Part shown: in pieces, positions 1,739-62,900 of the stretch
Numbering within the stretch: position 1 is the first letter of the stretch
Layout of the letters: the number at the start of each line of letters is the position of its first letter
Source of the DNA: Ophelia neglecta
Taxonomy: Eukaryota
Length of the DNA stretch: 64,000 bases
Assembly (NCBI GenBank): GCA_965285935.1
Contig: OZ260666.1
Location: 68,386,001-68,450,000 of the forward strand
Reading direction: 5' to 3'
The notes under the pieces: model-generated
Told to the model about the DNA's origin: nothing
The model's input: only the letters and a program-made list of their open reading frames with translations
Databases searched by the model: none
Program-made: the position numbers and the translations under genes

Positions 1739-4625
1739 ATCATCCGGACTTCTGAGCCTCCTTTCGAAAAATACATTTTCGACATAAAACTGATGATTGA
1801 AGAGAAACTTTTTAAGAAAAAAGTACAAACACTTTTTTTTCTAGTTCTACACGCCTATTTATATGTGTATAGCTGATGATAGGTCTGGCCGTTTTAAAAG
1901 GACGATGGTGATGAAATAGTGAAGAATCACCATCGCCATTTATTTTTGCGACCTGCCTAGCATGAAACGGAGAAGCATAGTATCTAAGATTAGGGTGTGA
2001 TGGCCGGGGGACAGCTCTCCGGTGTTATCGAGCGAGTCGGCCCTGAGACGCCCGGGTAGACCGCTAATCATGCGGGGAGCAGCCCCCGGTCAAAGATACT
2101 GCATCGATATCTCCACAAAACTGAGAAGACAAGAATATTACTTGCAGATTACTGTATCAGGAACGCTGGGGGCGATGATATTGATGATCTGACGTCCACA
2201 TCCGGGTATTCAGGAGCATAGTGGAGAAGGAACAGTACTTCAGAATACAGGAAAGCAATTGTTTATGGGACTGCTAGAAACGTCAAATTCAGATACCTCA
2301 AAGGAGCTTTACCATAAAATGGAAGATAATGCGCAATGCGAAACTAATATTTTCATTTCTCTGACAAGGGACGTTTAAGGTCATGTTTCCGTCCAATATT
2401 CAGTTACTATCAAACGCTACTTCGGCAAATGCAATATTTTCTTCGGAGTACTGAATTTGTTATAAATTAGAGATATTTATTCGGAACCTTCCGCTCTGAG
2501 TCGAGAACATTCGAGTGAAATGAACTCTGAGCCTGCTACTATAAATATTCAAGTTTTAATCAAACCCATTTCAACTACATTTGATAAGCAAAGTTGACGA
2601 TGAGTTAATTACATTAATAAACTATCATTATTAATAACAAGTCATTATTCAATGTCTAATACAACACACCGAGAGTCTATGTGAGGTTACCTCGGAGGGT
2701 GGGCTGTGTGGGCTGAATTCATTGAAACAACAAACAATATCATTCCTGCCAATACGACCAAGGTCCATAGGCCAAACAGTTTGAGACTGAAAATACTATA
2801 AGTCAAATATATGAAAACGGTGGACATATACTTTATTCATACAAAAACCTTACCATAGAGATTTGTGGTTATCTTCGTTTTGTCCATGGATTTAGGTAAT
2901 TAATATTTTCGTCATATTTTATTACAATGTTCATTTTAAAAAACATTACAATTCAACAGCAACATGCAGGGACCGCCACTAATAGGTAATTTGAAGCCCC
3001 TAGAATGCACCTATTGATTAAAATTGGGTTCGTAGAAAGTAGCTCTCGTTAAATCAGGGAACGCCATTTTGGCATATACTGTCTTTATCAAATATGAATA
3101 AAATAAGCAGTGTCGTAAATGTCGTAAATGGATTTCATCTGTCAGAATGTAGGCAAGCCGACGCCAAAGGAACTTTATCACAACACTCAGAATTCGAAGC
3201 ACAGTTTCATAATGGAATGATTTTCAGGCAAATGGGCACATTAGGCATAATTTCTGTGAGAACGCCGTCATCCATAATTCAACCCCAATCCATATCTGTC
3301 TCCTATACACCGCCTGTTGTAGTCGTCTGCTAAATGAGCACCTTTTACTTATTTCTATCTGCTAGTTAGGCTCTGAACCACAAATTCCATTTACTTTTCA
3401 TTCAGTCCAACGCTTTTTGCTGACATTATACACATATTGGTCCGAAGCCATTATTTTCACCTGAACCGTGAGCAGAACATGCAATAAAGCTGTGTATCAA
3501 ATACAACTGATCCCTCGCTTGGTCAGATCCCGGAAAAACCCCTAAGAATTGTGGGTAAGGCGCCTATAGTATACGAGCTTGCGCATTACACGCCCGTGGA
3601 CTTCACAGGATATCGGACTTATTTCTTGTACGTCAAGTCGTCTGGGCGGAAACAAACGCACGTGCTCAGAATTTGATGGTTGTAAATGAGTGAATTATTG
3701 GAAGGCGTTATACTGTTATTTACAAAGTCTCATTTACACTGGACTTTGATGAGCTTATATAAATAAATCCTTATATACAAAAGCGGATAAAACAATGATA
3801 ATTGGTCTATAATTTATATAGGCCTACCCAGTGTGCATTCAAATACGGGACCTACCGGGAAATGGGGCTGACCGTGCACGGCAATACCTTGATCCGGGAA
3901 ATGAAACCAATGTCTACAAAATCACGGCATATCACGATACCACAATTGCACGAACATTTAATTTCAGTCATTTTCCTTAGTCCCTTGATCGAAAAGCAAA
4001 CAGAAAAGAATACATATTTAAAGACAAACATTAAAAAAGCTCCATATATAGGCAGTCTAATTTTACCAAATAGGTTGAAAATGTATTAAAGTTGTCACTC
4101 CCTTGGACCGGCTAGGAGGCCGCAAATCCCGATTAAGTTCTCGCCTTAAAGAAGTTAGCGAGAGTTCAAAAAATTATTTTTATATTTGTATGAGACACTT
4201 GTCTGAAGCACAATGTAAGTAATGAAATGCATTATAATTTATTCCAATAACCAACATATAATTCTATGCAAATTACAAGGCCGCATTTTAAGCAATGAAC
4301 TTACAAACGAAGAATACTTCCCTAGCGGAACTCAAAACAACTAGCTCTACGTTAACAATAAAATGAACTACGACTACGACAACCACCAACTGTAGAAACC
4401 GAATTCCGGCCTATTTCATTCCCATTCGATTCAGTACCCATTCGGTTCTTTTCTTTGCGTACATTTATAAGTGTTATAAAGGTCTATTATACAGCGAGCT
4501 ACGCTCGCCGGCGCTTGGCTTTGGCCTACATGCCGCTTCCTGAGGGGATCTTGACTGCTGCCCATTCTCCCTCTCGATCGCGAGGTATTGGTCATTACCG
4601 ATCTGTCCAGAAGCAATTTATTTTC

Positions 4626-5041
4626 ATTACGGCCACTGTGACCTGGGGTCAATAGTGCTTCCTGGTCATTACTTCCGGTCTGAGAGCCAATCAAAGCGCC
4701 ACATAGCGGTGATAAATCTAGAGCGGCGGCGGCCTGCTGGAAAATGAGCAAGTTTAATGGTTTCTAACAATCGAAGGTAATGACCACCAGAATATTTGCG
4801 ATATTTATACCTATAATCCTTCTTGGTCTGGTCTGACACGACTGCGTGGCTCCTTTCCAACCGAGTTGTGACGCGACTTGATGCAATGTTTCGCGCGGGT
4901 GGCTCCAGTGACATTCCTTCGCTAGAGCAGACGACATTTATCCGGCAGAAAAGTCGCGCTAATACCCCCAGCCGGATTTCCCGCCAAATATCCGTGAAAT
5001 TGCATTACTTCTGAGGCGACGCGAGGGAAATCCCGGTAAGA
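4626..5041 (+). promoter_or_regulatory. Promoter/enhancer-like module
   Basis: ETS site ACTTCCGGT (4671), CCAAT box AGCCAATCA (4685), GATAAAT (4711), GCAGACGACATTT (4927), TTTCCCGCC (4977), NF-kB-type GGGAAATCCC (5025-5034), and donor-like AAG|GTAATG (4777) and CCG|GTAAGA (5036). Confidence 0.45.
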
Positions 5042-5133
5042 AGGTGGTCGGGTGAAATCAAAGGAGCAATTCATTATTCTTCATCCCGGTTCATCCGGGA
5101 CATTTATCACGTGTGGGACGGATGATGAGCATC

Positions 5134-5440
5134 AACAGAGACGCTGGGCCTGATGCGGCGGGGGTGGGGGTGGGAGGGTCTCGCCTGACAGAGACGCTGG
5201 GTCTGATGGTGGAGGGGATCTCGTCTGTCACGTGACATCACGTGGGGTACGGATGTGGAGCCATGGCAGAAATGCTGCGCTTGTCGGGGAAGGGATCTCG
5301 CTTGACGAAAGGGGCACTGGGCCTGATGGGGAAGGGGGCCTCTTCTTTCACGTGCGGTTACGTGGGGGACTTATGTGGAGCCTGGACAGACACGCTGGGC
5401 CTGTTTGGGGACGGGATCTCGTCTGACGAGAGGGACGCTC
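5134..5440. repeat. Degenerate GC-rich tandem repeat (~40-bp subunits in a ~120-bp higher-order unit)
   Basis: ACAGAGACGCTGGGCCTGATG, GGGATCTCGTCTGAC and TCACGTG..ACGTGGGG..ATGTGGAGCC blocks recur. Confidence 0.75.
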
Positions 5441-6555
5441 GCTTTGATCAACGCCTTACTAAAAACAGGAATAAGCAATCTTAGCTTCTTGGCAAAAAGC
5501 GCCCCGCGCAAATCAAAGAAATACCTATTAACTCCTTCTGTGTTAGGCCTCCTGAGACTTTCCCCCTCAACTGGGCCTTGTTAGGCATTTATGAAAACCT
5601 TTAATTTATTTTAAGCTTGATGCCTTCACCAATTCATTGAACTAGTGCCTGTTCAAGTCCGTTTTAATGCTACAGTTAGGTTTTGATAAAAGATTATGTC
5701 CAGGTCTTACATTCTGAACACGTAATTCACAAATACACGTCATTTGTCGAGAGAAAAAATCAATGCTGATTTGAGGTGAGTAGCAGCGAAGTTACGCCCT
5801 AATTTGTACAGTTCAATGATGTCTTAATCCTGGTTCCGATTTGAAGTTAACATCGCTATTATAGAATCCATATTATTCTCGTCTACTATTCAATCCTATT
5901 TCACCCTCTGACAGTCGCAAACAGCCGAATTATCGCCCACTAAAAGATCAAAGTGTTTCTGTGGTGGCCATTGTTCGAGCAGACGACTAAGGCGTCTCCT
6001 GGTCCCAGACCGTTAATCCTGTCTCAATGGACCGCACCCCTTTGACAGGAACCAGTAGGCCCCATGTCATTACCAACATTCACAGACAACGTTAATGAAC
6101 AAATTGCCTGGATTTATATATTGAAGCACGCTGTAAAAGCTAAAGAAAAACTTTATGATGTATAATTTATTTATATTTCCCGGCCGTATTTAACAAGATA
6201 GCTCGAAATTCCTTAGATTAGATTGTTGCTAAAATATACTAACGGTGCTGTTTTAAGAATAAAATATATTTTGTGGTACTTAATGGACGCTGGAAAAGTG
6301 ACCTTTGTAAGACTTTTGACCTGCTCTCTTCAGCAAACGAAGAAATAATATCTTAATCATGGATGACCTAACTGCCTCCCGCGTGGAACCGATGGTATCG
6401 GTGTATATTGACAAACAGGAAGGGAAAGCCAAAATGAACTGGACAGCTATTCACAAAAGCTGTTCATTATATAGGTCTTTTTTAAAGGGAGGATTTATAC
6501 TAAAACGCGAATTATCTAAGACCATGTTCAGAACAAGACAACTCTAGTGTTTAAG

Positions 6556-6842
6556 ATTCAGAGTAAGGTTTAGACGCAAATTTCAGAGTAGGGTTCAAAG
6601 AACACATTTCAGAGTAGAGTTCCAAGCCCAAATTTCAGAGTGCAGTTCATTGAACACATTTCAGAGTAGAGTTTCAAGCCCAAATTTCAGAGTAGGGTTC
6701 ACAGAACACATTTCAGAGTACAGTTCCAAGCCCAAATTTCAGAGTAGAGTTCCAAGCCCAAATTTCAGAGTAGGGTTCAAAGAACACATTTCAGAGTAGA
6801 GTTTCAAGCCCAAATTTCAGAGTGCAGTTCAAAGAACACATC
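6556..6842. repeat. 26-bp minisatellite with alternating A/B units
   Basis: Ten units starting TTTCAGAGT lie at an exact 26-bp period (6581, 6607 ... 6815), plus one degenerate unit at 6556. A-type units end GAACACA and B-type units end CAAGCCCAAA. Confidence 0.95.
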
Positions 6843-9781
6843 AAAAACTCAAATTTCAAATTTTCTGATATGGGGATAAAATAGAGACATTAAAAAGGTA
6901 ACCTAGTTAACAGAAATTGAGGTGTTAACTTTTAATGGTCCGCGTGAGTTGAGCATTGACGATCAAGGAGTCCAATAAAATAAAGGGAGGGGGAGGGCGG
7001 GGGAGGGGAGGCGTCGGCTTTCTTTTGGAGTCAGTGGGACAGGGTGTCTAAGGTTAGGCCCCAGACCCCCTTTGTGTGGGGACACCTATCACAGTGCCCC
7101 ACGGGGTCGTGACCTCGTGCCCCCTCACCCTTCCTGTCTAGATCTTCGCCCATGCCCCCTACGCCCCACCCACCCAACCGTCACCTCGAGAAATGCCAGG
7201 GGTGATCAAAAAAGCACTCCCAGGTATGACTGGGTGGTTTGCTATTATTTAAAGATGGAGATATTTACCAAAATAATTCCGAAAAGGTAATCAATGATTT
7301 AAGCGCAGGCTGAGTCTTATTCTTGTGATAATATCGTCCTTGACAATAAATGCACTCGTGGCCCAGCGTTCGGATGGGATTGCTTTTTATCCTATTTTGC
7401 CATGTGAAAAATAAAAACTATGCAATAGAGTTGAACAAACCGAATAACCTTAAGAAAGGATGGGTTAACACGATTATGCAGCTGCATGTTGACAACTGGG
7501 CAAAAATGATCACATTAGCACTCGGCATTTTTTATTTAGATATAGCATGCAATCTTTAAGGATATAATTCATAACTGCCTTTCGATCATACAACACTTTT
7601 TAATGCCATGCAATACACGAATTTTGAAGCTGAAGACCCTTCTGCCTGGCATAGTTGCACTGAATTTATCTGAAAGGAATTAGTACAAATACAACATGAC
7701 TGACAATGAAGAATGTCAATATAGGAACGAAAAAATAATGACTATGGCGACATAAGAGCAAAAATATACAAACATAACATCAGCAGATTTAGATTCTATG
7801 AAAGAAAGCTTGCTGGAAGTTCATTAATTTTAAACTCAGTTGACAGGTGATAGTTTAATTTATTGTCAGCGATGTCTAAACTTTTTTTGAGCAAGTGATT
7901 AACGACTAAAATGATTGATGTTGTGAATCGATCATCGGTTAGCCTTTCGGGTTTGATTTTGGATCGCTCGTCTCATCAAGGATGGATGACACGGGTGTTA
8001 TTGTACAGCAGAAAAGCAAGACAGATGTCTCTCGATTAATTTTGTAGTAAATTAACGGAGCCACACGTCTTCGCGGAGATGTAGGTCTATAGTGCTACTT
8101 GTACATTTCTAGTGCATTAATTGTGGGAAAAAATAGCGTAAACACTTTGATGAAGTGTGGGTTTGTTAGGCTCAGTCAATGTCGTGTGATTAGAGCATTT
8201 ATGTTAAAACTCAATTTAATTCAAAAGGTGTGAAGATAGCGCTGTTAATATGAGTTGGTAACAAACTGGCGATGGGCTCCAATCTTGGCTAGTATGTGGC
8301 ATGACATTTAGTTTATTATTCATTATTTATTTTATCATTAATGTAACTATTTATCATGGGCAGACCTATCATTAGACTGTTTAATTATCATGGAGGCCAG
8401 GATTTACAAAAGAGTCACAAATATATTAAAAGGCGTACTGTGAAACCTGAGGGAAAGACAATATATATGGAAACAAAAGAAATAAGAAAGGGTTGGGTTT
8501 TGACAAGGAAACGGTCTATGAGCTTGGTAATAGACTAGGGGATTGAAAACGGGAGTCATACTGACAGGAACTTCTCTAAAAACCTAACATATCGGTTGGG
8601 AAAAATATTTTTAAAAGCAACCTTTGCGATAGAAAGCCCCCAGAAAACTACACTTAGATAGAAAATCATTAAGATAAGCTTCCTATATTTGATAGAATGC
8701 CTGGCCTAGTATTTAAGTCCTGTTGGGCGGAGTTATTTTATATATACAAAAAAACGTACTTGAATTGAGAACTGGTTGATAATACAATTGAATTTTTTAT
8801 GTTTTCCATCTATTCTACGTCTCCATGTTTTTTTTATGTTATATTGTCCAATAGAAATAACTTGGCATGACAAGGTACTTAATAACGTTGTGATCGTTCC
8901 ATGAATTTCCTTAACTGATTCACGGTCATCTTCTCGTTTGTTTGTCATGTATCGCGAAATATTCGATCGAGATTCTATTTCCGGTGCCGCTCGTTTCTAC
9001 GAGTATCACTACTCGCACTGCGTGAAGGATGAAGTAGTTCGACCCGATGACAAAGAAACCGGCCGGCCATCAGGCGACGTCAGTTCACTACGGAATCACA
9101 TCTTTTCTAACTCGTTTTACGAACTCACAGTCTGGTTAATATGATAAAATAAAGAGAAAAATGGACACTTTTGTTAGTCATACAAATGTGATGACTCATT
9201 CGATAGCACAGTAGTTGTGAAAAAGGGGACTCATTTAATAGTTTCATCCTGATGAAAATATTCATCGTGTCTGAATCAAACATACCCTTGTAATATAAGC
9301 CCCTCCCCCAAGCCCCCCCCCCCCCCCCCCAAGCCCTGGCCGGGAGAGGCACATAGTGGGCCTATTGTAGTTGGAGAGGTCGACACGCTATTCTCAGAAG
9401 CTGGTGATTAAGACTACCACCTTCCACACCCTTCCACTAACCCAATCACCTCCGCACAGCCCCACCTCCCCCACACCACCCTGGGATGATATAACAGGGA
9501 TGACTGCCACCCCCTAGCTAAGCCTAGCAGGAGTGTTATAGTTTTACTGCAAGATGGGAAGAACTGCAAAAGTACATCTGGTTTGATGATTTATGGCCCT
9601 ACATTTTACAAAGTTGTTTATATAATTAGCTTAAGAAACCGATATTTTCCATTATATAGGAACATAGGCTAGCTCTGATAAATCTTATATGTGATCTGCC
9701 AAAGGTTAATTCACTATCACCAAATATTTAAATGATAAATGATTTGTTTTATCTTCATTTGACGAATCTAAGATATTAATT

Positions 9782-9825
9782 AACTTCCACTAGTTATCCC
9801 GCAACTTCCACTAGTTATCCCGCAA
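9782..9825. repeat. Perfect 21-bp tandem duplication
   Basis: AACTTCCACTAGTTATCCCGC x2 followed by AA. Confidence 0.95.
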
Positions 9826-11904
9826 TCAAACTCCTTAAAACCAAAACCGCATATAGCTGATTACCCTCTTGTTTTACTCGAGAATTTATGATGGCAATTA
9901 AACGCTTTAAATGTGACCTTTGCGGAGTGATATGGGTAATTTAGGCGACCAATAATCGGCTTTACGCTCTACTTCCTGTGAGCGATAATTGGGGATGAAT
10001 GGCACTGATCGTCCAATGATTTCTTTGTGCCTAAATCCGGGTACTTGACTCATTACAATGTTGTGATCGCCTTAGATGTCGGACGACGAGTCATTCCATG
10101 GTCCCAGAGATATGCGTTTCGAGGAAAGCGACAATGCTTTCAATAGGAACCTTAGATCGATTCTATTAAAGAAACCCATGGCCTATATACAAAGCCTAAG
10201 CAACGGGGAGGCGCACGTCATGTAAGTCGAACCGTTTAAAAGTGGCAAACGTCCTGATTTGAAAAGTCTTCTGTCTTGACGTCTGAAACATTACTCTTTA
10301 AATTCTAGGCGAACATCTTGTGTATTTTAGTGGAATTCTTGGCTTTTTTCATTGTGTAAGTAATTGGCAACAAAGCATTTGCCTGAAAGATTTTATAAAT
10401 TCCGATACTCTGAGCTAGCTCCTAATATGAGGGTTCAGATGCATCAATGCGCCCTACAAATAGTCCCTGGTGGTGTTCTTTTCACAGCCAAATCTCTAAG
10501 TCCCGGCACGAGCCTGATTTCCGGTGTGTTATTGCACACCACCGGGACGCCAATACTTTCATTATAGCTGTCAACTGCCAGTTAATATCGCGATCAAAAG
10601 GTGACCGAAAAGCTAAGCTGGTTTCCGGCTTCAATTGCGTCTGAAACTAGTATGAAATCGGTTTGCCAAACGATTACCTCCGATGAAAAGTCACCCGGGC
10701 CATTTTCCCGCCATCTCGAGGTCATGTGACCGGTGGAGTCGTTTGGCGCGTGATCGGGCCTGTTGTTCGTCTGCACGGGAGTCATACAATATATATTGGC
10801 ACATGAAATGCTCGCCCCCCTGCCGTGTGGTTCATTGCTCGTTGCCATGGAGCTTTGGGGCTGTTCTCGCGTGATTTCACTCATAATTCCGCGAGAGTAA
10901 GTGACACGATTGCCGACTTTAGCCGGAGAAATTCATCTTCCATTTACTTCCGGTTGAATTGGCACCATGAATAGAAGCCCGGGGATTAACGGAATAATAG
11001 AAACTCGAAACCAGCGCAGCAGCAAAGCAATCGCAAGGAGTGCCAGACAGGGAACCAGCGAAGTCGGAACAAACAAAGTCAATTTAACTGGACCGTGTCC
11101 AATGAAATCTTATAAGGTTTTAGATGCAAGAGTGACTGTACAAATGAACCTTAGCTGATAAATAGTCAAGTTTTTCACACAAAAACGTGAAATACCGACT
11201 TCTTTCGGGTAGCTATCAATGGTATCCTTAAGCTTTTGTTTTGGTATGTAGGTAAATCATGGTGCAATTAAAATGTAGGCCTATTTCTAAATATAACTAG
11301 GTAAGATATCTACCTAGCTGATTATGATGGGTGTAGAAATTGAAGTAGTTCTTCCAAATTTATGTCGAAGTACACCTGCCTAGTGGATTATGGAATTGTC
11401 TCTGCATGGGCTTCAAATGTAAATAGACGAATAGTGATCTACACTTTAAAATGTTACGCATAATAATCAAAGCCTCTGGTTAATTATTCATAATTAACTA
11501 CACTTTTTCAGTCTCGCACTGGTTTGCCTGTCGTTACATAATCTAACGCCTATAATTGATTATACGAATTTGCTATGTCGAGCTGTAATTTACGCCCCGG
11601 AATATTTCTAAATCTTTTCATAATGGGTAATGATTGTCACACCTCATTCCAGAAGAATTGTCAATCTTTTGGCTACACCATTGTGATAATAAGGTGTAGT
11701 TTAAATCTTAATTCGTGAATCCGCAGGACACTCGGGCAGACGACCCGTTGTTGTACCTAAATCTGGCAAAATGACGCTTGGTTTCACCACATTACACCGA
11801 CTTCGCGTGTCATGAGGGTAATCACGTACAAACACGTCAGCTACGAGATTTGTCGACAGTGATGCTTACTGCCTCGTTTCTCACATTTTCTCCTTAACTG
11901 ACTG

Positions 11905-11918
11905 GTTACCCTGGCAAC
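11905..11918. promoter_or_regulatory. RFX X-box
   Basis: GTTACCCTGGCAAC matches the 14-bp X-box consensus GTNNCC-NN-RGNAAC. Confidence 0.55.
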
Positions 11919-12522
11919 AAAATCTCACTCAACTGCAAAGATACTAAATTCACGACATTTGTAACAGTAGATCTGTCAGCACAGCACAAGGCAGACCTCA
12001 TATTTGTATATATGGATTACCTGGCAGTGGCGGGAAAAAACTCCAACGTTCAGGCAGGATTTTGAAGAAAAAAAAGATAACCGGAGTTTCTCAGAAGATA
12101 AACTACAAACGGGCTTTCGCAATCGCTACCTAGGAACATCCGACGGGGATTCACCAAGCAGTACATAGGAATTAATATGAATCAAAGGTGGGTGCAGATT
12201 TTGTTCAAAATGTATAATTGAATTGAAGAGAAGACAAGCCGATGATTATGCTTGCATGTGGCTTTCTTGCAATAACTAACAATAGTAGTTCTTCACAGCG
12301 TAAGGTACCGTAAGAATTAATCAATTAATGACAATATAAAACGGAGTGTTTCTTTAAAGAATAGTGGACAACCTAGTAAACAAGCACCATGATCAAAATG
12401 ACAGTTAAGCATGGCAGTGGGGGTGGCTTTTCGGAGGAGAAGATTTATTTATGTATATCGCTTTTGTGGCAAATGGTTGTTAACTTTGACTTATGGAATA
12501 CGCTACCCCATTTCGAGAGTAT

Positions 12523-12665
12523 GGGTTGGCTGGTTGTTTGGGTTTTTTTTACGTGGCTTTCAACACTTATCGGTCATGTCGCCACGGTGCCTACTTGTGA
12601 CAGTGGGCTCAATGCCCTCTTTATAGAGCTGCCTCACTGGAGTACCTGCCGTAGACCACAAACAC
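12523..12665 (-). mobile_element. 5'-truncated SINE-like retroposon with a 10-bp target-site duplication
   Basis: It is flanked by the direct repeat TCGAGAGTAT (12513-12522 and 12666-12675). The left end GGGTTGGCTGGTTGTTTGGG reads as an (AACC/AAAC)n-type 3' tail on the minus strand. The body (..GGTCATGTCGCCACGGTGCCTACTTGT..ATAGAGCTGCCTCACTGGA..) resembles spiralian SINE 3' regions as I recall them (not verified by a search). Confidence 0.7.
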
Positions 12666-13121
12666 TCGAGAGTATAGGTCCTAGCCCGAAGGCCCGCATC
12701 CAGGAACGTGTACAAAAAACATCTTTGAGATGCGGCAACATGGGGGAAGGAGATTGAGCGTCCTGACCCCCCATTAAGTCCCTGGAACTGGAGGGGGAAA
12801 TGGCGCACTGTGTAAGCCCAGTGTCCTTGAATGTCCAAGCTGGGTTTTTTGATATATTTTTGATAAATATTCAATGCCTCCAATGAATATATCTGTTAGG
12901 CAAAAGCATTCTTGTATACAGTTTCGGGCAGATTATCATTGTAAAGTATATAAGTATATTTATAGAATGAATTTAATTGAGGTGAACCGCTCCAGAACAT
13001 ATTTGATCTTACTCGTATTGCTGTTATTTTGTGTTTTTTCGTATCATGGGAAGACGTTGATTACTTCCAGTTTGAAGAGATGTAGATTTGAATATAACTG
13101 TCTTTAGTTTATTCAGACCTC

Positions 13122-20600: not shown

Positions 20601-20681
20601 TGGTTTGGTGAAGCGCGAGCTCGGATCACCGCAGCTATACCGGTCTCGTCTGCTTCGGCTCTGTGAGGCGAACACTTAAAG
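20595..20681 (+). other. Candidate non-coding first exon (start approximate)
   Basis: It begins ~30 nt after the TATA box and ends at AAAG|GTAATG (GT at 20682). Its only ATG (20600) is closed after three codons (ATG GTT TGG TGA). Confidence 0.55.
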
Positions 20682-51171: not shown

Positions 51172-51211
51172 TATATATATATAGATCTATACATAATTAT
51201 ATATATATATA
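51172..51211. repeat. Interrupted (TA)n microsatellite
   Basis: TATATATATATAGATCTATACATAATTATATATATATATA. Confidence 0.85.
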
Positions 51212-54200
51212 CTATAGCGATGACCGTACTCTTGAGCATAAAGAGAATAAAAATCGCTTAATCGCAGTATCAGGCTTGTTCTAGAGGCAATGGACATTTC
51301 CCAGATCTTCTCGGATATGTGGAGGTTGTGTTGTGTTCACATTTCCTTTTGCCTGCATTTTGAAATTCGCATAGCGCAAGTGTATGATTTTAATTACGAG
51401 TACGTCATACTGATAAACACAGAGGAATGTATCAATTTTTATATTGGACTTTGTTTCCTTTGCTTTCAAGGCGAGGGTGAACCCACTCACATACGACCGT
51501 AACCGAGAAACCTTCTAATGGTGCAGATTTTTAAGGGGCGGGGGGAGAGGATAAAGCCAGTCGCCTTTTTAGCACAATTATAAGATTATTAAATTTCTCA
51601 GTTGAAGCTTTGTGAAAATGGATGGCAGAACTGACCACCCTCACCCCCTCCACATTGGCGACTGTTTCTATTACTTTGCTAAAAAAAAAGACACCGAATA
51701 TTGAACTCTTTTTCTTTGATTGCAGGTACGAAGACATTTGGAGTCGGGAAAAGCGTTTTTCCGTGAAATACCTTCGCTGGTTGATCTCAGATATGATCCG
51801 GTGTTGACTGTGGGCGCGGCTCTGTGCATTCCTTGGCGTGAGACGAGCTAGACACCCTTTTATCGCTCACTGCCCCCCGGGACTCGGTGGATATACGCAC
51901 TCGCTATTTACAACTCAATTTCCCTGCAAGTTACGTGGTGAAATTCTGGTGTAAATTCACGGTACAATCATGCCCACTAAAGGTAGGTTCATATTTCTTT
52001 GTATGACTGATACAAACTGTTTTATGGGCTGTCAGGGTCAGAAGGAGGGCATGGGAGGGCGTCCGCTCATATGAGGGGGGTGGGGTGCATCAGAAATCCT
52101 GGAGGGGCTCTCTGGAGTACATTTTACCCCCCCCCCCCCCCACACACACAAACAAATACATACTCCCTATAGCCGTCAATGTTTTCTTTTTTATCGTTTC
52201 CTTCGTTCTAATAAGGCAGAAAACTTTAAATGTTCTATAGTAAAAACTGGCTATATGTCTGTAGTTCCAAAATATTAGATTTAGTATAGATACTGAGGTT
52301 ATTACCTGCATAAAACGATTTAATAGGTAAGTCCGGTATCAAACAATCTAACCTGTCCGTTAATATACTTACGTGTTTAAGTTTATAAGTCCCAACAGGG
52401 TGGGCGATATCATATAAAGTGGTGTCAAATGCCTTTTAATAAATCAAGACACCATTTCTCTACCAAACTGACATGATACAACCCTGAAATGTATCTTAGC
52501 AATCTTCTAGCTGTGTTCTACAGCCCATTGACCAGTCATTCAATTCTCTTTGCTATTATTCGGTCGGCCATTTACCAAGCGAGTTACTGTATTTTATTGA
52601 ATTGCAGCTTAGTGCTGTTTAGTGCCTGGCTTTTGTGTCGACACTTTCATGTCTGTTTATCAAATAGCCACCCGGTAGAGATTACATCCTTGAGTCGGTA
52701 ACGATTATTGCTTCAGTTAGGCTCTAGATACTTGGTGTTTCTGTTCGCGCGAATTTAAGTTCGCACTCCACTTAATCAACTCCGATTCCAGGGCAAGTAT
52801 TTCATGAAAATATTGCGGTTGGACCAGATTTGCGTTCTAATTTGGAGAGGAACCCGCCACTGCGCTGTTTTCAATATTTACTAATTAGTTTTGACGTGGG
52901 CGGGCTATTAATAAGGCTGTGTTCATTACTTAATAAGGTTCTCAGAAAGACATTTTGGGCCTTTTGTCTTCGGCCAGGCCAAATCCCTCCCCTGAGCACA
53001 TGGCTGGCAATTTTACACTGATATTGTTATTACAGTAAAGTATCCCCTTGCAAAGCGATTCAGAAAGGGGCAGTTGCCTCAAATTTCAAGACCATTTCGA
53101 CAGCAGAAAAGTGTAGAAAAACGTTCTGTTAAAAATAAGCTAAACTGTTTTTAACAACCTACAAGGCACTTAACCACACTCCCAAGGAAGTCCATATTAT
53201 GTGCAAAGTAAGATTTTAGATAAACATATACATAATATTTATCATTTTCCCGGAGTACAAAGTGTTAATACAGTTTGTAAGTATTTTGCAAACTGGGGAA
53301 ATTAATGATCGATTTAAACGTCAACAGCTATCAAGCAGTGCAAAAATTGATATAGCTAATGTCGTCTGCTAAATCAGCAAAACAGCAATTTTGTATCTAT
53401 TGCTAAAGACCATAAAAACCGCAGATGATTGATTTAATCAAAATAATTCACTGATATCATGTGTAGCATGTATTAGCTGGCTCGGGGGTGAACATTTCAT
53501 GATCCACACCCGGGATACACATCTGGATTTTTCATTGTTGCGGTGTCCCTACGACAAGAACACCAAGCAACAAAGAAAGGGTTTCACTATAACACAAATC
53601 ACATTGTTATTTGTACATTTCTGTCCACCATTGTATTAATATCAGCCGCGTGACCCCTACCCAGCGTCAGGGTGTATCAGGTAATAATCAAAGACATAAT
53701 ATCGACAAATTCTCCCGCTGTGCCCAGGTTTCCCACCATTAGAAGCCGTATCTGACCGAGCCGATTCCCAGCCGATGTCAGTCTTTGATCTGTGCACGCC
53801 GTTTGTGACCGAGTTAGTCAGAAAGCGGTGAGATTAGCGAGGTAAATCGCTACATTGTCACTGTAATGGCGGCAATCAGTGACACGGAAGTGATTAAAGT
53901 GATATGCCTCTCTCATTGGTATTTGTCATGCATGTACAGGGATAACCGGAAGTACAAGAAACGCTGGTTTAGTACGAATGTTGGCCAATGTTGAAATATC
54001 AATTGACGCAAAATGGAAACAAAAACATTGCAGCGACTAGTATTATAGGCCAAGTAGGCATGCTAGACATGATCACATACTGAGCATGGCGTGATCCTGC
54101 CAGTCAGCTGTTCCCAAGAACAATGTCTGTGAAAGTATCATCACCTTTACTCAGATGCTTCCTTGGGTCAATATATGTTATTGATTTCTGTCATCCAACC

Positions 54201-57058
54201 TTATAATTCACCAGATAATAAAGAACAGACACCATTTATATCTGTTGACTGGAAGTATTGCCATCCAGTTCATCTTAGTTATCATGACCACTAAAGATCA
54301 GAGCCCTGGAAAGATGGCGTGGAATATCCATGGAATGGTTTTCTGCCAGTAAAGATGTCACTAAAAAAAGAAACAGTAACTTGCCAGTATTTTAAGGTCT
54401 GGACATGACAGAATCTTTATAAGTTATCCTTACAATCAAAGAGCAATAGAACAAGGATATTTACTGTAATCCCCGTTTCCAGACCCCATAATTTACCCAT
54501 GTCCCCGACCCGCCTAAGTCGCCATAATTATCACGTTTCTATCGCCGTTTAGCTAACCACTCGTTTGGGAGGAATTTATTTAAATGTTCTCTGAATTGCT
54601 GACAAAACTGTTTGTCGCTTGGGAACAATTGCCATTGAGTCGATATTGTCATGGGACTTAAAGCTCTATTGCTTATCACAATTCCCGTATCTTCAGAGCC
54701 TCTCCTGCGTCCTATTTCTGCGCAGACCGTGGCCAAGTGAAGCCCTACTGCGCCGCGTCCGCCAGACTTCCTGTGTCCCATAGGAAATGATTGGAAATGA
54801 AAATCATGGTTGCCTTTATTAGGTGAAATATTGCATCTTGATACACCGTGGTGTTATTGCCCTGCATGGTGCGGCCATCATGGCCTAGATGCATATCTGA
54901 CGAGAATTGCCGGACATATTATCACACGATGCCCTCCCGAGACCCTTTTCTACCAGCAAAGCCCAGTGGTTCTCTACTGGAGGAATTGCCTTCACAGGTC
55001 TTATTTTGGTTCGGCTAAAGATCTAAGAGCTCTAGTGGGTATCACTTTAATACCTTAATTTGATAACTGTTTAAATAACAACAAAGAATCATAAGATAAT
55101 TACGTACATATGGACAGGACAATAAATAATGATTTATTCAGCAGAGAGCCATTTTATTTGAACAAAAATATGCCAGGAGCCCTGACCATAATTCCCACCA
55201 AATACCCAAAAGGTTATACAGTGTGTTGCCAAGTACTTCCACGTAGCAGACGTATACATTATCAGCTCCATGATGATATATCTAAGTTAGAAGAGCCGTA
55301 GATGCCTGCTGCCTTTTTAACATGGCAGTTTGCCCTGGCCTCCATGTTGTATCCAGGCTCTGACAAGCCGGCCTGTCAACCTCCCGGGCCTTCCGGCTTG
55401 TAGGTGAAACTAGGGGTCTTGTAGCTCGAAAATGAGCCTGGCTGCTGAATTAAGAGCAGCCTGAGTGTGGGAAACCGATCAGCATCATATGGGTGAGAAG
55501 GGGAGGGGGGGGAGCATGTATGTGTCCCTCTTCGGCTAGATACTACTGTATTTCTTTGCTATTCGGGATTACAATCATTGGAATTACAAGCATCGGCTGG
55601 ATGTAGACATATAAAGCAAGCACTTAAAAAACTCCTCTCAAAGTCTAGGGAATGAAAGCAGTGCCTCTGCTGAAATGACCAACAAATCTCAAATAGAGTC
55701 CCCCCCCCCCCCCTCGGGAAAGTGGCGCAGACAACAAGCCCGGGAGTTGAAGAAGGCCTTTTTAATATGCCCGCCGCGCCTCGACCCCGATCCCGGGATT
55801 GCTCGGCCTCTGATGTCCTACCAATCATACATTTTAATTTGCTGCCGAGCTAAGCCCTCGCTAATTATGTGTAAATCTCCCTAAAACCTTGCTAAGGCTT
55901 CCTTAATACCACCCACCGACTAGCGTCTTCCCGCGCTAAGCCTCAGTCGTCTGCTCTACCTTATCACCATGTTTTTCTTTATTGCTTTTACAAATAGTCG
56001 GCTGTTCGCCTGCCAGTGTTTTAAATAGCGATTGTTTTTGCCGGTCGGAGAGCTGGAGTGGCCCGGATGTCATCTAACAGAGCATCAGTAGACGCGGCCT
56101 TTTGGCTGGACGCGGTCAAAATATCATGAATTTTTATTGGCAGCCATGCTCCATCTTGGTTGGCAATCGTAGCAATTTGTTCCGAGGTTGTTGCAATCTA
56201 GATAGGGTGTATAATGTTGACACCACATGCCGTAATATTCGTAATATCGGGTACTGATTAGACCTGTTATGCCCCGATCACCGCCTGCTTGTTTGCACCA
56301 ATAACCTTTCACTTCCTGCTGCGTTCTTATGAAAATAAACAAGATTATGGGTTCGTTGCTCTGACAGCGTTTTCATTAGATGTTGTCTAGCTTTGTATCT
56401 ACACATAAAACAAGCGATCTCGGCCGTTTTGTTTGATACACATGTATCCAAACACTTTGTTATGTTCTTGCGCCAAGTAGGCCAGAGAAACTCAAATATC
56501 GACTTGAACCGGCGCTATCTCGATCCCCTAGCCCCCATGTGCCAATTATCGCTCTTAGCAGCTCCTTGCTTTCTTTATTGGTAATCGAAAGCAGCTTTAA
56601 CCAGCAAAGAAAGTAGCGGATTTCATTCCAAACCTTTGATTCCCACCACAAAAAATGTTTTAGAAACTTCAAAAAAGTGGCAAGAAACAGCTGTAGGAAT
56701 GTTGTATTGTTTTCATATGGTATCTGCTTTCTCGTTACTCTCGTCTCCGATATCGTGAGATTTTACACGAGATTACTTTTGGCCACCTCATAGCTGTTAT
56801 ATTACAATCACAATAAAATCCTCTTGAAATTCTTGTAAGCTTCAAACATATAACATATCACTAGCCGTAGTTTTGTTCCCCTAAACACAGTTTTTCAGCA
56901 ACAATATAATAGTATCATTCTCAGCCCGGCAATGCTTTATTTGCACTTCTTGTTTTTCCCTATTGTATTTTCCAAAGCGACAAAGCGTAAATTTCACGGG
57001 CCGTGATCGCTCCTTTGTTGTGTTTGTAAATCGCCATCTAATTGGGCCTCACTGGGCG

Positions 57059-57072
57059 GTTGCCCTGGATAC
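57059..57072. promoter_or_regulatory. RFX X-box
   Basis: GTTGCCCTGGATAC, about 40 bp from an ATATCGTCTGC motif. Confidence 0.5.
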
Positions 57073-58695
57073 GGTTTTTGGACTAAGGTCGGTGATGTGG
57101 CAGAATGCAAATATCGTCTGCCTCGACTTGTTGTGAATGAGAATATGAAGGGAAATGTCGTTTGGACCGAAATGGAGGCATAATGCTCCCATAGGCATAC
57201 AGATTGACATAAGACATGGTTCGCAGTATTAGAAAAGCCAGACGCATGGCAGGCCGGGGCGATGCCATGGTGATTGTCTATAGGTGTACAGAATGTAGGT
57301 TATACTGTACACCAAAATCTGTATCGAATTTAGATTCATCGTTTCTTTGGCTTTTTCGCACTTAAAAAACATCATAAGTATAAAACAATTTGACTCTGAG
57401 TCATCAAGTTCTCAACTTTGTTTTTCATGAAGAAACACATGTTTAATTTATTTATCCAGTGTGGTTAATAAGCGTTCATCTGTAGCAAAGTCTCATGGTG
57501 TGTGTTTAGAATCAACAATGCTGTATGGCAGCATGTTTTTAAATGTCACGCAGATGAAGTGTTTATTTTCAAGAGCACATTTCCCTGCATATTCTTTCAC
57601 AAGCCTCATTTTGAATTCAGGTGTGAAAGGAACTAATGTATTTGTTTAAATTTAACTTTTAGAGTAAAAACACATTATCAATATCCCACAAAATGGACTA
57701 AAAACAACAAGTAGACATTTGGATTAACCGACTCCCGTCTTTTTCTGGTCCCAAAACCTCGTTTGACAATCGAAGATAGGTAGCCTTGTATCTATGACAC
57801 GTTAAATAGATAGGTGTATTTTTAGCCAGGAGATACAGAACAAACACAGTCACACAGCCCGACTTTCCCACTGGTTTTTTTCCTATAAAGGGTATTGATC
57901 TAAATCCCATGCTGAGCTAATCAAAGACCGACTTTGCGGATTCACGTTTTATTTAGGCAGCGGGATAATAGTGTATTTAAATAACAAAATTGCCGTCAAG
58001 ATCCTATTGTTCGAGGCTGTTTTAATGTTGCATAGGATGCCATTTTTGTGTTATTTTCCATGTTGGATGCGGCCGCTCTGGTGGGAAAACAATGCTGTGT
58101 TATTGTCCGTCCGTCAGATCGAGTTTATTGTCTCCCTGACAGTTAATAACTGTTCGATTGAAAGCCGATTGTTAACTAAAGGATTGATGCCATGTCGTGG
58201 CAGTTTGATCTCATATAAAACTGTAATCGAACGCAAACATCACCGAAACAGAGCAATTCTAAACCTTCTCCTGAGGCTGATTTGACAGTTGTCTGCTAGA
58301 ATTCACTAATTGATATGTTATCAACTTTAGGAAACATTAGAACGTTTTTTTCCCCCATTTTACAGGTGTTTATATATTTTTACTGTTCGTGGTTTAATCA
58401 ATATTGTTACAGACGTGTGTCCTACCTGAAACAGCTACACTCGCCTTTCATAGGCTGCTATCAATTAATCATCGCTTTGCAATAGTCATTAATAATCATT
58501 ATAAATCTTCTACATTATATGGGGTTTAGAGGGCCTGTGTGATCTATGCCATGTTTTCGGGGGGGGGGGGGGGGGGTCACCGAAAGACACTCGTGTTTGG
58601 TCCATGAAGTCATATATAAGGTCGTTTGTCTTATGTTTTTTCTTGTGTTTATTCATTTTCTCTATTGGCTAATCTTTTTTTTTTCTTTTTTTCAG

Positions 58696-58767
58696 AGGAA
58701 ACCGAACAGACCCAATCACCCGGAGACCCCAATCAGGTCGAGCCAAAAAAGGTCCGGCCAAAACGAG
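58696..58767 (+). other. Candidate internal exon (72 nt, or 126 nt with an alternative donor at 58822)
   Basis: Branch-point-like CTAAT (58669), a ~20-nt pyrimidine tract and CAG|, then an abrupt shift to GC-richer sequence. Donors are GAG|GTGAGG (58768) and AAG|GTGAGG (58822). Two reading frames are open, with no recognisable homology. Confidence 0.55.
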
Positions 58768-59642
58768 GTGAGGTCACCGACGGGTCATCGCGTCTGCCCC
58801 TACACGACTTCCGCTCCCAAGGTGAGGCTCTCAGGGTCAAAATACATCTGTCCACCAAAAAAAACATAAAACTGAGCAAATAACAATTCGAAAGGAAAAC
58901 GCAATTTCTTAGTACATCTAAGGGATGATCTACCTTGCAACTAAACCACTATATTTCATTCTGATTCTTGTACTATTTAATCAAGTTCCGAGCAAAAAAT
59001 TCCGTTTTCATTTAAACAAACATGGTTCTCAATGCACTATATAAAAGAATCTCCGATAACTCTTCATGGTACAAACCTCTTCGTCTGGTGGACGGAAGTC
59101 TTGCTTGACCAAATAGGTCACTCGCGTATAAGGCACAATTTCACTATTTATCAAAATCTGACTCTTTTGGCTCAACTTTTCTTTGGCCAGTTTTGTTGCA
59201 CACCTTTTAACATTCTCCTTCTAAACATACTATATGTTTCTTTAATAATCTTCTCCCTTCCTCTGAATTAACTTAGGTGTTGAAATAAACCAAGTCCACA
59301 CTGTAAAGTATCCATTTAAAGTGAAATTTGGCCATGATACCACATAAGTTAACCATTTAATCGCCGAAAATAAAGGCCAAATCTGAAAACCATATACATT
59401 AGCAGTTCCTCCAAACCTGAAATTGTAGCCTTTCGTGGCCAATCCGAGCCTTGCCTTTATTAATTATATATTTTCAATTACTTAAATTATTCGCTGACAG
59501 TATTTTCATATATATTTTTATCTTTGGATGGCTAGAATTGATTCGATGAGTTTTAATAGATTCAGACTTGGCTTTTTACACTTTGGCTCCTTGATATGTT
59601 AGTTGTTTATAGGCATGTATTATCAATAATGTATTACAATTA

Positions 59643-59762
59643 CAGTGAAACCTGCCTTACAGGCCACCTCTATAATCAGACCATCTGTCAATTCAGATAA
59701 CCTCCAAACTCAGACCAGTATTCTCCAGTCCATTTGGTGGTTTTCATTTACAGATTTCACTG
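59643..59762 (-). mobile_element. Family C MITE, internally deleted copy (120 bp)
   Basis: TA|CAGTGAAACCTG ... CAGATTTCACTG|TA. The first ~60 nt match the reverse complement of the 3' end of 27536-27713. Confidence 0.9.
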
Positions 59763-59787
59763 TACTTCATTAACGTTTGTCCTAGTA

Positions 59788-59946
59788 TAGTGAAACCTGC
59801 CTATTGCGAACCATCACGGTACTGGAAAATACTGATCTGATTATGAAGGTGGTCTACATTCAAGAGGAAAATATGGGCTTTATAGTAGTGTTTGGAACTG
59901 ACAGGTGGTCCGAAAACAGAGGTTATCTCTAAGGCAGGTTTCGCTT
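59788..59946 (+). mobile_element. Family C MITE, more degenerate copy
   Basis: TA|TAGTGAAACCTGCC ... TGACAGGTGGTC..AGAGGTTATCTCTAAGGCAGGTTTCGCT, colinear with 27536-27713. Confidence 0.75.
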
Positions 59947-62900
59947 ACTTTACATCATGGCTAGTTGAAGAATACCACATTTTTTATGGAGGTTGAATGT
60001 TGCAAATATATCGATCTATAGAGTCGGGATGGTTTCTAACATGTGCCCTGCTATCTTGCTCCATGCATGCCCTACTTAAGACCGATGTCAATATCAATTA
60101 CTTTAGATGGTCCAGTATCTAAGGAATCCATGATTACTCGACTTGGACGGCCCAGTAATGTCATCGCTCTTTCATTTTCTCGCCATTTTGTTTAGGATTG
60201 TTGACTTTTTGCCATTGCCTTGCCACTTCTTCTTTTGCGCTACCACGGCGCTGTTCTTGTAGTTTTCTCATCTCGAGCCAGTATCATTGCGCATTACGAT
60301 CACATACTGTGTTGATTGACTAAGATCCATCCACGATTGTTCCTTAATCTACTAGTTACAGCCTGTGTTGTATTCGGCCACTTTTTCCTATTACACCCTA
60401 TCAACACTGTTGTTTTGGTGGGCTTCTCGCGGAGGAATTCGATTGTCAAGTCATCTACAGACCAAACAATGAGTGAAGTGCAGGTTTCGATTGCTACTAT
60501 TCGGTTTCAATGGTAGAGAGAGACTCGGAATTGACCGTTTCTCTATCATTCTCTATAATGTTACGTCACTGCTGTAATAATGACGAATGCCGCTTTCCCA
60601 CAAAACGGTCATTAGCGACGATTATTTCCTTTTGAGGGGGTTAGTAATTGCATGACAGCGGTTTTGAACTGATATGGCCCGGGGCCTTCTCTCCCCGTTT
60701 GGTATTTAACGGCTGATCTTTGACCTGTAGGAGCTGATGAGTTTTAAATCACGCCTCTGCCACATGCATCATATTCCCATAATATCGCTCATTTGCACCT
60801 ACCAATGAATGTGTAATCGTTTCTCAAGGGATTGGTGGGAAAACTTACCGCTTTTCAAATTACCTATGAGATATACTCAGTACGTGTTTAGTATGTGAGA
60901 ATTGTAACAGGTTATAAACCAAGACTAAAGATGGCGGCCGTTGAAGACAGATTGAGATGAATTTATGACGATTGCTAGTGATAAAGGCCGGGTGATGAGG
61001 ATATATTGCCCGGGGCCAGTCGAAGTGGGAGGGGAGCGTCATGACCGTTGTGATGTCACGCAGAGACGCTACTGTTATACTCTACGGGAGATATGGAGGT
61101 AAAAATCACCGCGGGCAACGGGCGGGAAATGTTACAGTATCGTCTGCTTTACAGAAGTCGTTTGATACCCTCATTAACTCGTATCGATACCGCATTTCAC
61201 CTTGGTAACTGAGCACAAACGCTTGCGTGTGACCTCCACAATCCCATTGTGCCTTTTACACCGGACGGTGTAAAGAAATTCCCGTGAATTGAACAATCCC
61301 GTGAGAATCTCGTGCCCTCTAATTATGTCCTTGAGACGATCAGGAGTCTTAGAGTCCTTCAATCGTCTGCGACATGAAACAAGTCGTAAGCCACCGTAAA
61401 AAGCGTGTAAGGCGACTGGTTTAGTTTCAAATTTCAATCCTGACGAGCAGGATTAAATGGCCGTCTGCCCGTTTTTGTGTTCTTGTGCAACATAAATTGC
61501 TAGATCAAGTGGGTTTGGTAACACCCAGTAACAGGTGAGGCTTGTAATTCCGGTATCTGCATATAAAACCGAATCCCCGGTCTTATGGACTCCACCGTCC
61601 AAGGTTGAGACATATAAACGGAACCTTTTGGCCTATCGATTCCACTGTCTGATGTAGGGACTTTAAAGTCTTATCCCAATTTAACTTATACAAGAGAACG
61701 TGAGAAACATATAGAGACAAACAGTGCAAATACGATATATTTTGCCGAATTTAAACTCCTTTCTTTCCATCATCAGTCTACCTTAAAGCCAATAGTAGCT
61801 TATCTAATCAGTGAATACATATTATGAGTACATGTATATACTAAGATATGCATCTAAATTCAGCCAATTTGCACAGTATTCAGCAATAAACTGAGCTGTT
61901 CCACCAAACTCAAAACTAAACCAAATCCGCCAATATGTCTGCCCAACACACGTAGCTTTTAATATAATACTGAGCTTTTCCTCTAAGTTCCATTCATTTT
62001 CAATTGGTCTTTATTGCAGTGTTCACCTGGTCTTGCCCTTTACGATGAACATAATTACATAGTCTTGAGGTGAAGGAATTATACGTAGCGGCGTTCCTTT
62101 TGATGTATTGTATTATCGCCCAATTAAGCTCTCCTAAGTCTACTTAAGGGTGTTTTCCTCGCTGTGGTCGGTATTGTGTTTTTAAAATGAACACGCGTAC
62201 AAGAAGACTTATATGTTTCTACACTGGTCAAAGTACCATTAAACATAGTATTACATGTTAATACCAAGAAGTATTTTTGTATTAAAGACCTCACTATGTG
62301 TTATGAAGTGGTGCAATATTATACATTTAAAAGCCTCAGTTTAAGGTATATTCTTAAGGGGGAGTTAAGAGTCTTGGCGTGTGTTGGTAAATGATGGGAT
62401 CCTTATGATGTGGTCAGAGCTTAGCCAGTATTAGTTAACAAGTATTATTCAGAAATAGTTCCTTTACAAAACGCCTCATAATCGGTTCTTTATTAAGTAT
62501 GCTTCACAGGGTACGTATAGCACAATGTGTCGGTTGCTTCTCGTCGTTAATCAGATAGGCTATACGTTATAATAAGTTCCTTGCAACATTTCAGTTCTTT
62601 TTCTTCGAAGGCAGTGACCCACGTACGCCATGAAAGTCAACATTTATAGTTTTTCATGAGAACATGATAAACCAGCATAATTCCATTTTCCAGTTGACCC
62701 AATCCCACCTTTTCTATTGTTACACTGAATTGCTTCCTCTTGGATGATCTCACTTTCAAGGGTCGATGGACGATGTATCACTTATATATGCCTATGTCTG
62801 TAAAATGTGTATCGATCACATGATCATGAGTGAACACGAGGTATGTAGCTTCTGGTTCATTGTAACTAGACCTTGAGATGATAGTCTAGTCAACTAGAGG

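Follow-up and report, generated by a model that had tools for sequence, protein, structure and literature searches.

A CpG-containing motif of about 13 positions, scattered through the 5' landscape of a Pax6-type gene and enriched at homeobox loci in Ophelia neglecta

In annelids, topologically associating domains (TADs) and chromatin loops take up a minor share of the genome and are enriched in transcription-factor and developmental genes, including pax6 and Hox (bioRxiv 10.64898/2026.05.18.725834). The boundaries and anchors of these structures lie mostly in introns or between genes. In Owenia and Dimorphilus they have a YY1-like motif, and in Capitella teleta 58-69% of them have an unassigned, species-specific motif (bioRxiv 10.64898/2026.05.18.725834). 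Here we describe a motif of Ophelia neglecta, built around the 7-mer TCGTCTG, that recurs throughout a 64-kb stretch of DNA upstream of a Pax6-type gene (C9:68386001-68450000 of the 762-Mb assembly; the whole stretch is referred to as the window). The annelid boundary motifs, both the YY1-like and the species-specific ones, seem to us its closest parallel.

Like the motif described here, that of Capitella is high in information, matches no known profile and occupies mostly intergenic or intronic parts of developmental transcription-factor territory, a likeness at the level of description. The Capitella motif is located at contact-domain boundaries and anchors, whereas ours is known from sequence alone, and at 0.5 sites/kb across a whole domain it is much denser than would be expected of boundary elements of that type. 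A second point of comparison is the MEX motif of Caenorhabditis elegans, which is X-enriched and belongs to the rex sites of dosage compensation. It is likewise a word of ∼ 12 bases that singles out a territory for a chromatin-level machine by its local density. The territory of MEX-type motifs, however, is an entire chromosome, on which they gather at discrete recruitment sites, whereas the Ophelia motif is scattered and its territories are single developmental-gene domains. The motif appears to be undescribed, yet of a known kind, namely a lineage-specific cis-motif tied to developmental-gene domains: literature searches with the motif string in either orientation returned primer listings and nothing presenting it as a site, although not all papers containing the strings were scanned.

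The exact word GTCGTCTG occurs 21 times in the window (14 plus, 7 minus), compared with 0.76 ± 0.84 times in dinucleotide-preserving shuffles, none of which (0/100) reached 21 copies. Its variant ATCGTCTGC is found 8 times where 0.32 copies are expected. An earlier annotation of this DNA (the sequence-only reading) had listed the same 21 and 8 copies with their coordinates and had put the chance levels at about 1 and 0.3; a pattern search reproduces every copy, the chance levels agree with ours, and the enrichment is kept in the k-mer count against dinucleotide-preserving shuffles that it had suggested. The 7-mer core has 39 sites in the window, 28 of them on the plus strand and 11 on the minus strand. 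The excess also persists under higher-order backgrounds, where the same annotation had allowed that it might vanish: the 8-mer TCGTCTGC is present 28 times, compared with 1.45 under an order-3 Markov model and 9.5 under an order-5 background that is itself partly trained on the motif. In the order-3 comparison, TCGTCTGC is the highest non-simple 8-mer of the window and ranks, together with its one-base shifts, just below poly-C/G. One-base variants of TGTCGTCTGC are nearly absent, and a search with the degenerate 11-mer WTRTCGTCTGC that allows one mismatch finds 30 sites where 2.84 are expected.

Around the 39 core sites, A is preferred at position -4 (21/39), W at -3, T at -2 (28/39) and G or A at -1 (29/39), and the core is followed by C at +7 (28/39) and T at +8 (19/39). 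Position tables of these sites and of the 145 CGTCTG-anchored sites in the whole of the sequence examined give the consensus A-N-T-(G/A)-TCGTCTG-C-T and contain no information outside about -5 to +8. The information therefore spans ∼ 13 positions, in line with the A/T-rich 5' flank, the 3' C and the ∼ 13-bp length that had been proposed. The motif is a real, high-information, free-standing word.

The copies do not belong to a repeat family. In an all-against-all blastn comparison of the ± 200-bp flanks, similarity is restricted to overlapping neighbour sites and to one local duplication (5221/5419); since the flanks are otherwise unrelated and the tables carry no information beyond the ∼ 13 positions, we reject a dispersed repeat, miniature inverted-repeat transposable element (MITE) or satellite family as the source. 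When the coordinate lists are compared, 0/39 core sites lie inside TRF tandem arrays or repeat families of the window. The sequence-only reading had likewise held that the motif is not simply a repeat and lies outside MITEs and satellites, and the alignment over longer flanks that it had named as evidence to the contrary is not seen. The window as a whole is poor in repeats, and it contains neither an Rfam family nor an open reading frame of at least 150 aa.

We then followed the motif through the window and 100 kb of flank on each side. It is concentrated in a domain of ∼ 112 kb, from ∼ -16 kb to +96 kb in window coordinates, which contains 60 core sites (∼ 0.5/kb); the adjoining sequence has 12 core sites in 152 kb. 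Relative to the whole genome, the density of the 9-mer GTCGTCTGC is 13.6-fold in the window, 14.9-fold in the domain and 0.8-fold in the adjoining sequence, and the 12-mer AATGTCGTCTGC reaches 64-70-fold in the window and domain. The ratio of observed to expected CpG (CpG o/e) is ∼ 0.9 throughout the window and domain. At the right edge of the domain it drops to 0.15-0.5, and this drop coincides with the end of the motif-dense sequence. In the left flank, CpG o/e is kept at ∼ 0.7 and the motif is sparse. Judged by its CpG o/e, the undepleted domain is probably unmethylated in the germline.

The coding exons of a Pax6-type gene begin ∼ 8 kb beyond the end of the window, and the paired exon matches PDB entry 6PAX better than Pax-8, Pax-5 or Prd. 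Since these exons lie downstream on the plus strand, the window represents the 5' regulatory landscape of this gene. The sequence-only reading had placed the window in no developmental-gene context; the Pax6 exons supply one, and it is the key to the distribution of the motif.

As an independent set, we used 30 loci of 3.2 kb at homeobox exons on five chromosomes, C1, C2, C5 and C7 among them, of which 10 come from the Hox cluster (C1:60.5-61.1 Mb). TCGTCTGC is among the top three 8-mers of this set (24 copies compared with 1.95 expected), and the 9-mer has 8.5 times its genome density. The ten Hox-cluster loci alone contain 16 core sites in 32 kb. Genome-wide, the 12-mer is found 850 times compared with 94 for its reversed control, and the 9-mer 12,297 times compared with 6,180, so that the genome-wide count that had been proposed also places the motif above its controls. 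For a test of proximity we took the first 100 genome-wide 12-mer sites, which cover C1 from 0 to 107 Mb. A homeobox is found at a distance of up to 10 kb from seven of them (0.92 expected, p = 4e-5) and of up to 200 kb from 20 (10.3 expected), while a control with G-protein-coupled receptor genes on C1, made by coordinates, shows no association (1 site compared with 0.62 expected). The C1 sites are also clustered, with 14 gaps below 50 kb where 4.5 are expected. The motif is tied to the homeobox gene class, at loci independent of the Pax6 domain.

As a rough count, the genome-wide 9-mer excess of ∼ 6,100 corresponds, at the window density of 0.22/kb, to ∼ 28 Mb of territory, or a few hundred domains of ∼ 100 kb, which is a plausible number of developmental loci. 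On C1, GTCGTCTGC repeats at intervals of 2-4 kb along 18 kb of a single strand (C1:3512985-3531355), and it occurs three times at 12-base steps at C1:3290393-3290425. Both are probably tandem arrays of genes or repeats, which make the 9-mer count of the genome too high.

Smad/Mad, YY1 and CTCF sites do not account for the motif. The sequence-only reading had pointed to Smad and Mad elements, and the motif does share GTCTG/CAGAC and GACGAC with them. However, its 5' ANTR flank and 3' C belong to no Smad element, it is not palindromic, and the 145-site table contains neither GRCGNC-N5-GTCTG nor the palindrome GTCTAGAC; because there is no information at -9 to -4, no GRCGNC stands five bases upstream of GTCTG. 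A Smad/Mad element is rejected. CTCF is rejected as well: its core CCASYAGRKGGCRS, which the motif does not resemble, is matched once in the 64 kb, with one mismatch, compared with 0.39 expected.

YY1/Pleiohomeotic (Pho) is a Polycomb-recruiting and looping zinc-finger factor with the site AAGATGGCGGC, which has a CCAT core. The motif shares with this site the A-rich 5' flank and the order ATG-N-CG-N-C (AAATGTCGTC and AAGATGGCGGC agree at 6/8 core positions), and both contain CpG and are found in developmental-gene domains. Nevertheless, where the ATGG/CCAT core has an invariant G, the motif has T and continues as TCTGC; 97/145 CGTCTG-anchored sites have this T, and the 39 window sites all have it because it is part of the core that defines them. 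Because of this replacement, the motif is not a YY1 site, and from its letters it could at most be the site of a zinc-finger protein related to or convergent with YY1. YY1-like words (AANATGGCGV) do occur in the window at positions separate from the motif and are modestly enriched (8 compared with 1.7 expected), which is of note given the YY1-like motifs at annelid TAD boundaries.

Human ZBED1/DREF has the consensus TGTCG(C/T)GA(C/T)A, and the Drosophila DNA replication-related element (DRE) is TATCGATA. By its consensus letters, the 5' half of the motif, T-(G/A)-TCG-(T), is the same as the DREF half-site, down to the choice between G and A, and an excess of TATCGC words is seen both in the window and in the 60 bp that follow the motif. 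The two sites part in the 3' half, which reads CTGC in the motif, and the motif is not palindromic. DREF works at promoters of housekeeping and proliferation genes and not in developmental landscapes. By consensus letters, the motif also has AGACG in common with the Prospero/PROX1 site. The sequence-only reading knew of no characterised factor with the full site, and the lack of fit to Smad/Mad, YY1 and CTCF agrees with this for those factors.

Within the domain, the spacing of sites is Poisson-like, with a mean of 1.8 kb and a coefficient of variation (CV) of 0.95. There are 11 gaps below 300 bp compared with 8.8 expected, and a few direct pairs are 19-31 bp apart; the arrangement is neither regular nor strongly modular. 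The sequence-only reading of one copy roughly every 2 kb holds as an average and fails as a regular interval. The ± 60-bp flanks contain 5.8 CpG, compared with 3.8 at random domain positions, and have a GC content of 0.46 compared with 0.41 (p < 0.0005 for both). The CpG-rich modules that had been described are thus statistically borne out, within a window that is CpG-undepleted throughout. Words over-represented within 60 bp of the sites are the E2F-like TTCCCG/TCCCGC/GCGGAA and TTCCCGC, GGCGCG, TATCGC and further motif copies on the same strand; E2F-like TTTCCCGCC/GGCGGGAAA is found near about one in ten motif sites (e.g., 41070-41095, 43540-43568 and 61115-61135). This combination of CpG- and GC-richer flanks, E2F-like words, same-strand copies and direct pairs is typical of bound regulatory DNA.

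Sites on the plus strand outnumber those on the minus strand by 28:11 in the window (p = 0.009) and by 39:21 over the domain (p = 0.027). A switch in orientation lies at ∼ +79 kb, inside the Pax6 gene (L012): upstream of it the ratio of plus to minus sites is 38:16 and downstream 1:5 (p = 0.017, post hoc). The switch is reminiscent of convergent boundary motifs, which is suggestive only, and both it and the window bias are weak. Reads from three DNA runs of one sample, taken over the 6,000 letters of 45500-51499, show 99 positions at which haplotypes or individuals differ by a substitution; 40 of these are listed and none of the listed ones falls in a motif, where only ∼ 1.6 would be expected.

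The presence of the motif all across the Pax6 domain, together with its enrichment at Hox and other homeobox genes, suggests that it is probably the docking site of a DNA-binding protein that would mark or organise developmental-gene domains. We assign a probability of about 0.5 to the reading in which the protein is a lineage-specific DNA-binding factor, either architectural or Polycomb-linked. This agrees in part with the sequence-only reading, which had proposed an uncharacterised, possibly lineage-specific and methylation-sensitive protein at enhancers or chromatin anchors. Beyond the presence of the motif and its marking of domains, every step of this scheme is one that we infer. The motif would be recognised by a single sequence-specific protein of the lineage, with multi-zinc-finger and BED-like factors as the likeliest candidates. 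Bound at many places throughout developmental-gene domains, this protein would contribute to establishing or maintaining the state of a domain as a whole. It might do so as an architectural factor of the loop-anchor or insulator type or as a recruiter of Polycomb-type repression, in a role other than that of a classical tissue-specific enhancer input. The CpG at the centre of the motif may make binding depend on the unmethylated state that the domains keep.

Several observations weigh against this reading. The protein is itself hypothetical. The left flank is unmethylated and poor in sites, and the motif is therefore not required for the absence of methylation. Most of the C1 12-mer sites (80/100) are more than 200 kb away from any detected homeobox. 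Forkhead and nuclear-receptor genes show a loose association at most, on a mapped part of C1 that holds few such genes (for the T-box, HMG, forkhead and nuclear-receptor families there are too few for a proximity test). With one Poisson-spaced site every 2 kb, the motif is far denser and more diffuse than the sites of known insulator factors or of factors at Polycomb response elements (PREs), which act at discrete elements. Finally, the homeobox loci follow no orientation rule relative to the gene (18 compared with 19).

Of the other explanations, a compositional artefact, in which the lack of methylation in the domain would by itself make CpG words more frequent, might be suspected from the contrast between CpG o/e of ∼ 0.9 in the domain and 0.15-0.5 in its downstream neighbours. 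Controls within the window have already refuted it, and we consider its chances negligible: the enrichment stands against dinucleotide shuffles and the order-3 Markov model, the reversed 9-mer, which has the same CpG content, is found 4 times compared with 14 for the motif, and the unmethylated left flank has few sites. It is also quite improbable that the motif is a mutational or mobile-element residue, whether excision footprints, solo DNA-transposon termini in open, repeat-poor domains or a product of biased repair or gene conversion. Such an origin would suit the Poisson-like scatter and the strand asymmetry of the window, which obeys no gene-related rule elsewhere, and the palindrome TAGGCCTA is another unexplained dispersed word, here and at homeobox loci; its over-representation means that this genome may make short words by non-regulatory means. 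Yet ∼ 100 copies share no flank beyond 13 bases, the motif is asymmetric and has neither a target-site duplication nor a terminal inverted partner, its sites prefer CpG/GC-rich patches with E2F-like words alongside, and it is enriched in independent developmental loci, whereas the neighbouring flank, which is unmethylated and carries repeats, shows no such enrichment.

A transcript-level or initiation element, that is, a start or processing site of short non-coding transcripts such as enhancer RNAs or small-RNA precursor units, in the manner of the upstream motif of nematode 21U-RNAs, seems to us very unlikely. The bias towards the Pax6 strand (39:21 over the domain) and the promoter-type words nearby (CCAAT, E2F-like, ETS and TCTCGCGAG) fit such an element, but no Rfam family is found in the window, orientation is free at the homeobox loci, and the position table shows no conserved product-like sequence downstream of the motif. 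An ordinary developmental transcription factor or signal effector, for example a Prospero/Prox-like, BED/DREF-like or TALE-like factor or a Smad-type effector, is a possible alternative that we nevertheless doubt. The density of sites would then reflect the many enhancers of neural and patterning genes, and the CpG/GC-richer patches with E2F-like, CCAAT and ETS words, the homotypic pairs and the enrichment near homeobox genes are all as such a factor would have it. Enhancer inputs are normally degenerate, however, whereas the core of 8-9 bases is essentially invariant here, with hardly any one-base variants; moreover, the sites are Poisson-like over 112 kb and not gathered in a few modules, and the composite arrangement of Smad and Mad sites is not present.

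The motif bears on how developmental-gene domains are delimited and kept Polycomb-bound or looped outside vertebrates and flies. It can be found without any data other than the genome, is very specific and predicts developmental-gene territories in Ophelia neglecta, and it provides a direct experimental handle. If the factor is architectural or Polycomb-linked, domain identity would be encoded in a new, density-based manner; if it is an ordinary transcription factor, it would still be a major unrecognised input to many patterning genes. A stronger version of the architectural or Polycomb-linked reading, which we put forward tentatively and think unlikely as it stands, is that a spiralian lineage has a dedicated protein whose 13-base, CpG-centred site, repeated ∼ 60 times per developmental-gene domain, is a code for Polycomb or contact territory. 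If true, site density in cis would do what CTCF boundaries and Drosophila PREs do at discrete elements.

Table 1. Motif sites and other features in and around the window (window coordinates unless a locus is named)
Feature	Position	Strand	Remark
Window	1..64000	.	part of the ∼ 112-kb motif-dense, CpG-undepleted domain; 5' landscape of the Pax6-type gene (density and CpG o/e profile)
Pax6-type gene, first paired-box exon	∼ +72.5 kb (L011:8490-8620)	+	sequence comparison
Pax6-type gene, second paired-box exon	+73.5 kb (L011:9497-9750)	+	E = 5.6e-43 to PDB 6PAX; Pfam PAX 8.9e-41
Pax6-type gene, homeobox exons	+87 to +89.5 kb	+	exons of the gene between ∼ +72.5 and +89.5 kb include L012:∼ 6900-7030, L013:∼ 3100-3280, ∼ 4560, ∼ 5500
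TAGTCGTCTGC	3320..3330	+	
Core TCGTCTG (aaGTCGTCTGg)	3638..3644	+	
ATGTCGTCTGC	4927..4937	-	full match
Core only (atcTCGTCTGt)	5221..5227	+	local duplication shared with 5419
Core only (atcTCGTCTGa)	5419..5425	+	local duplication shared with 5221
TAGTCGTCTGC	5979..5989	-	
Core TCGTCTGc (tgtTCGTCTGc)	10767..10773	+	
GTCGTCTGc	11737..11744	-	
ATGTCGTCTGC	15414..15424	+	full match
ATACCGTCTGC	15426-15436	-	inverted near-copy beside 15414 site
GTGTCGTCTGC	16498..16508	+	acagtG variant
acagtGTCGTCTGa	18013..18019	+	
TTATCGTCTGC	18212..18222	+	full match
ATCGTCTGC	20248..20256	+	16 bases downstream of TCTCGCGAG element
Core TCGTCTGc	20646..20652	+	
ATGTCGTCTGT	22375..22385	+	
Core TCGTCTGc	31643..31649	+	
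TTGTCGTCTGC	32893..32903	-	full match
ATGTCGTCTGC	35919..35929	+	full match
Core TCGTCTGc	36781..36787	-	
GTATCGTCTGC	39764..39774	+	acagtA variant
TTGTCGTCTGC	41096..41106	-	full match; E2F-like TTTCCCGCC ∼ 12 bases later
GTGTCGTCTGC	43377..43387	+	
ATGTCGTCTGC	43569..43579	-	full match; then E2F-like TTTTCCCGCC
TAATCGTCTGC	45177..45187	-	
Core only (tgtTCGTCTGt)	46112..46118	-	
TTGTCGTCTGG	46942..46952	+	
ATGTCGTCTGT	48342..48352	+	first of direct pair 23 bases apart
TTGTCGTCTGC	48365..48375	+	full match; second of pair with 48342
TTGTCGTCTGT	49268..49278	-	
Core TCGTCTGc	49855..49861	+	first of direct pair 27 bases apart; CCAAT box in between
TTGTCGTCTGG	49879..49889	+	second of pair with 49855
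TTATCGTCTGC	50968..50978	-	full match
ATGTCGTCTGC	53359..53369	+	full match
GTCGTCTGC	55946..55954	+	
ATATCGTCTGC	57111..57121	+	full match
Core only (tctTCGTCTGg)	59081..59087	+	
GTATCGTCTGC	61137..61147	+	acagtA variant; GGCGGGAAAT precedes
ATCGTCTGC	61362..61370	+	
Core TCGTCTGc	63317..63323	+	then ETS-like CCGGAAGT
AANATGGCGV words	15956, 33958, 34175, 38307, 40146, 43651, 60180, 60928		
TAGGCCTA sites	3819, 11276, 13453, 13694, 13807, 17240, 24571, 24604, 26114, 30689, 33125		also in L021-L050

Other words are over-represented in the same sequences. The palindrome TAGGCCTA, usually as (A/T)TAGGCCTA(T/A), has 11 sites in the window (22 counted on both strands, compared with ∼ 2 expected) and is the top 8-mer of the homeobox loci (34 compared with 2.3). 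Its flanks are unrelated and, unlike the main motif, it is present outside the Pax6 domain too. The homeobox loci (L021-L050) are also rich in TGGTTCCA, CTGGTTCC and CTGGAACC, which belong to the near-palindrome CTGGAACCAG, and the related words TGGTTCCT and GAACCACG are over-represented in the Pax6 gene region (L011-L013); words of the CTGGAACCAG type may represent a further landscape motif. ETS-like CCGGAAGT is found 9 times in the window compared with 1.25 expected, and TATCGCTC and TTATCGCC are likewise over-represented.

Within the stretch covered by the reads, 48013-50884 shows fewer differences between the contigs of the three runs than 45500-47911 (e.g., 3 compared with 15 in run X1). 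This part contains six motif sites and could be a more constrained block, or the difference could be due to chance.

The repeats of the window include a 26/52-bp satellite of ∼ 10 units (6525-6888) and a 41/82-bp tandem array (29652-29812), neither of which contains the motif. Two pairs of inverted copies (27659-27715/59641-59697 and 14820-14873/18550-18603; 54-57 nt, 91-93% complementary) are likely members of short dispersed, MITE-like families. In the left flank, the motif-poor sequence from -52 to -33 kb (L005-L007) contains long threonine/proline-rich tandem-repeat frames, which represent mucin-like genes, and one thrombospondin-type-1-like frame.

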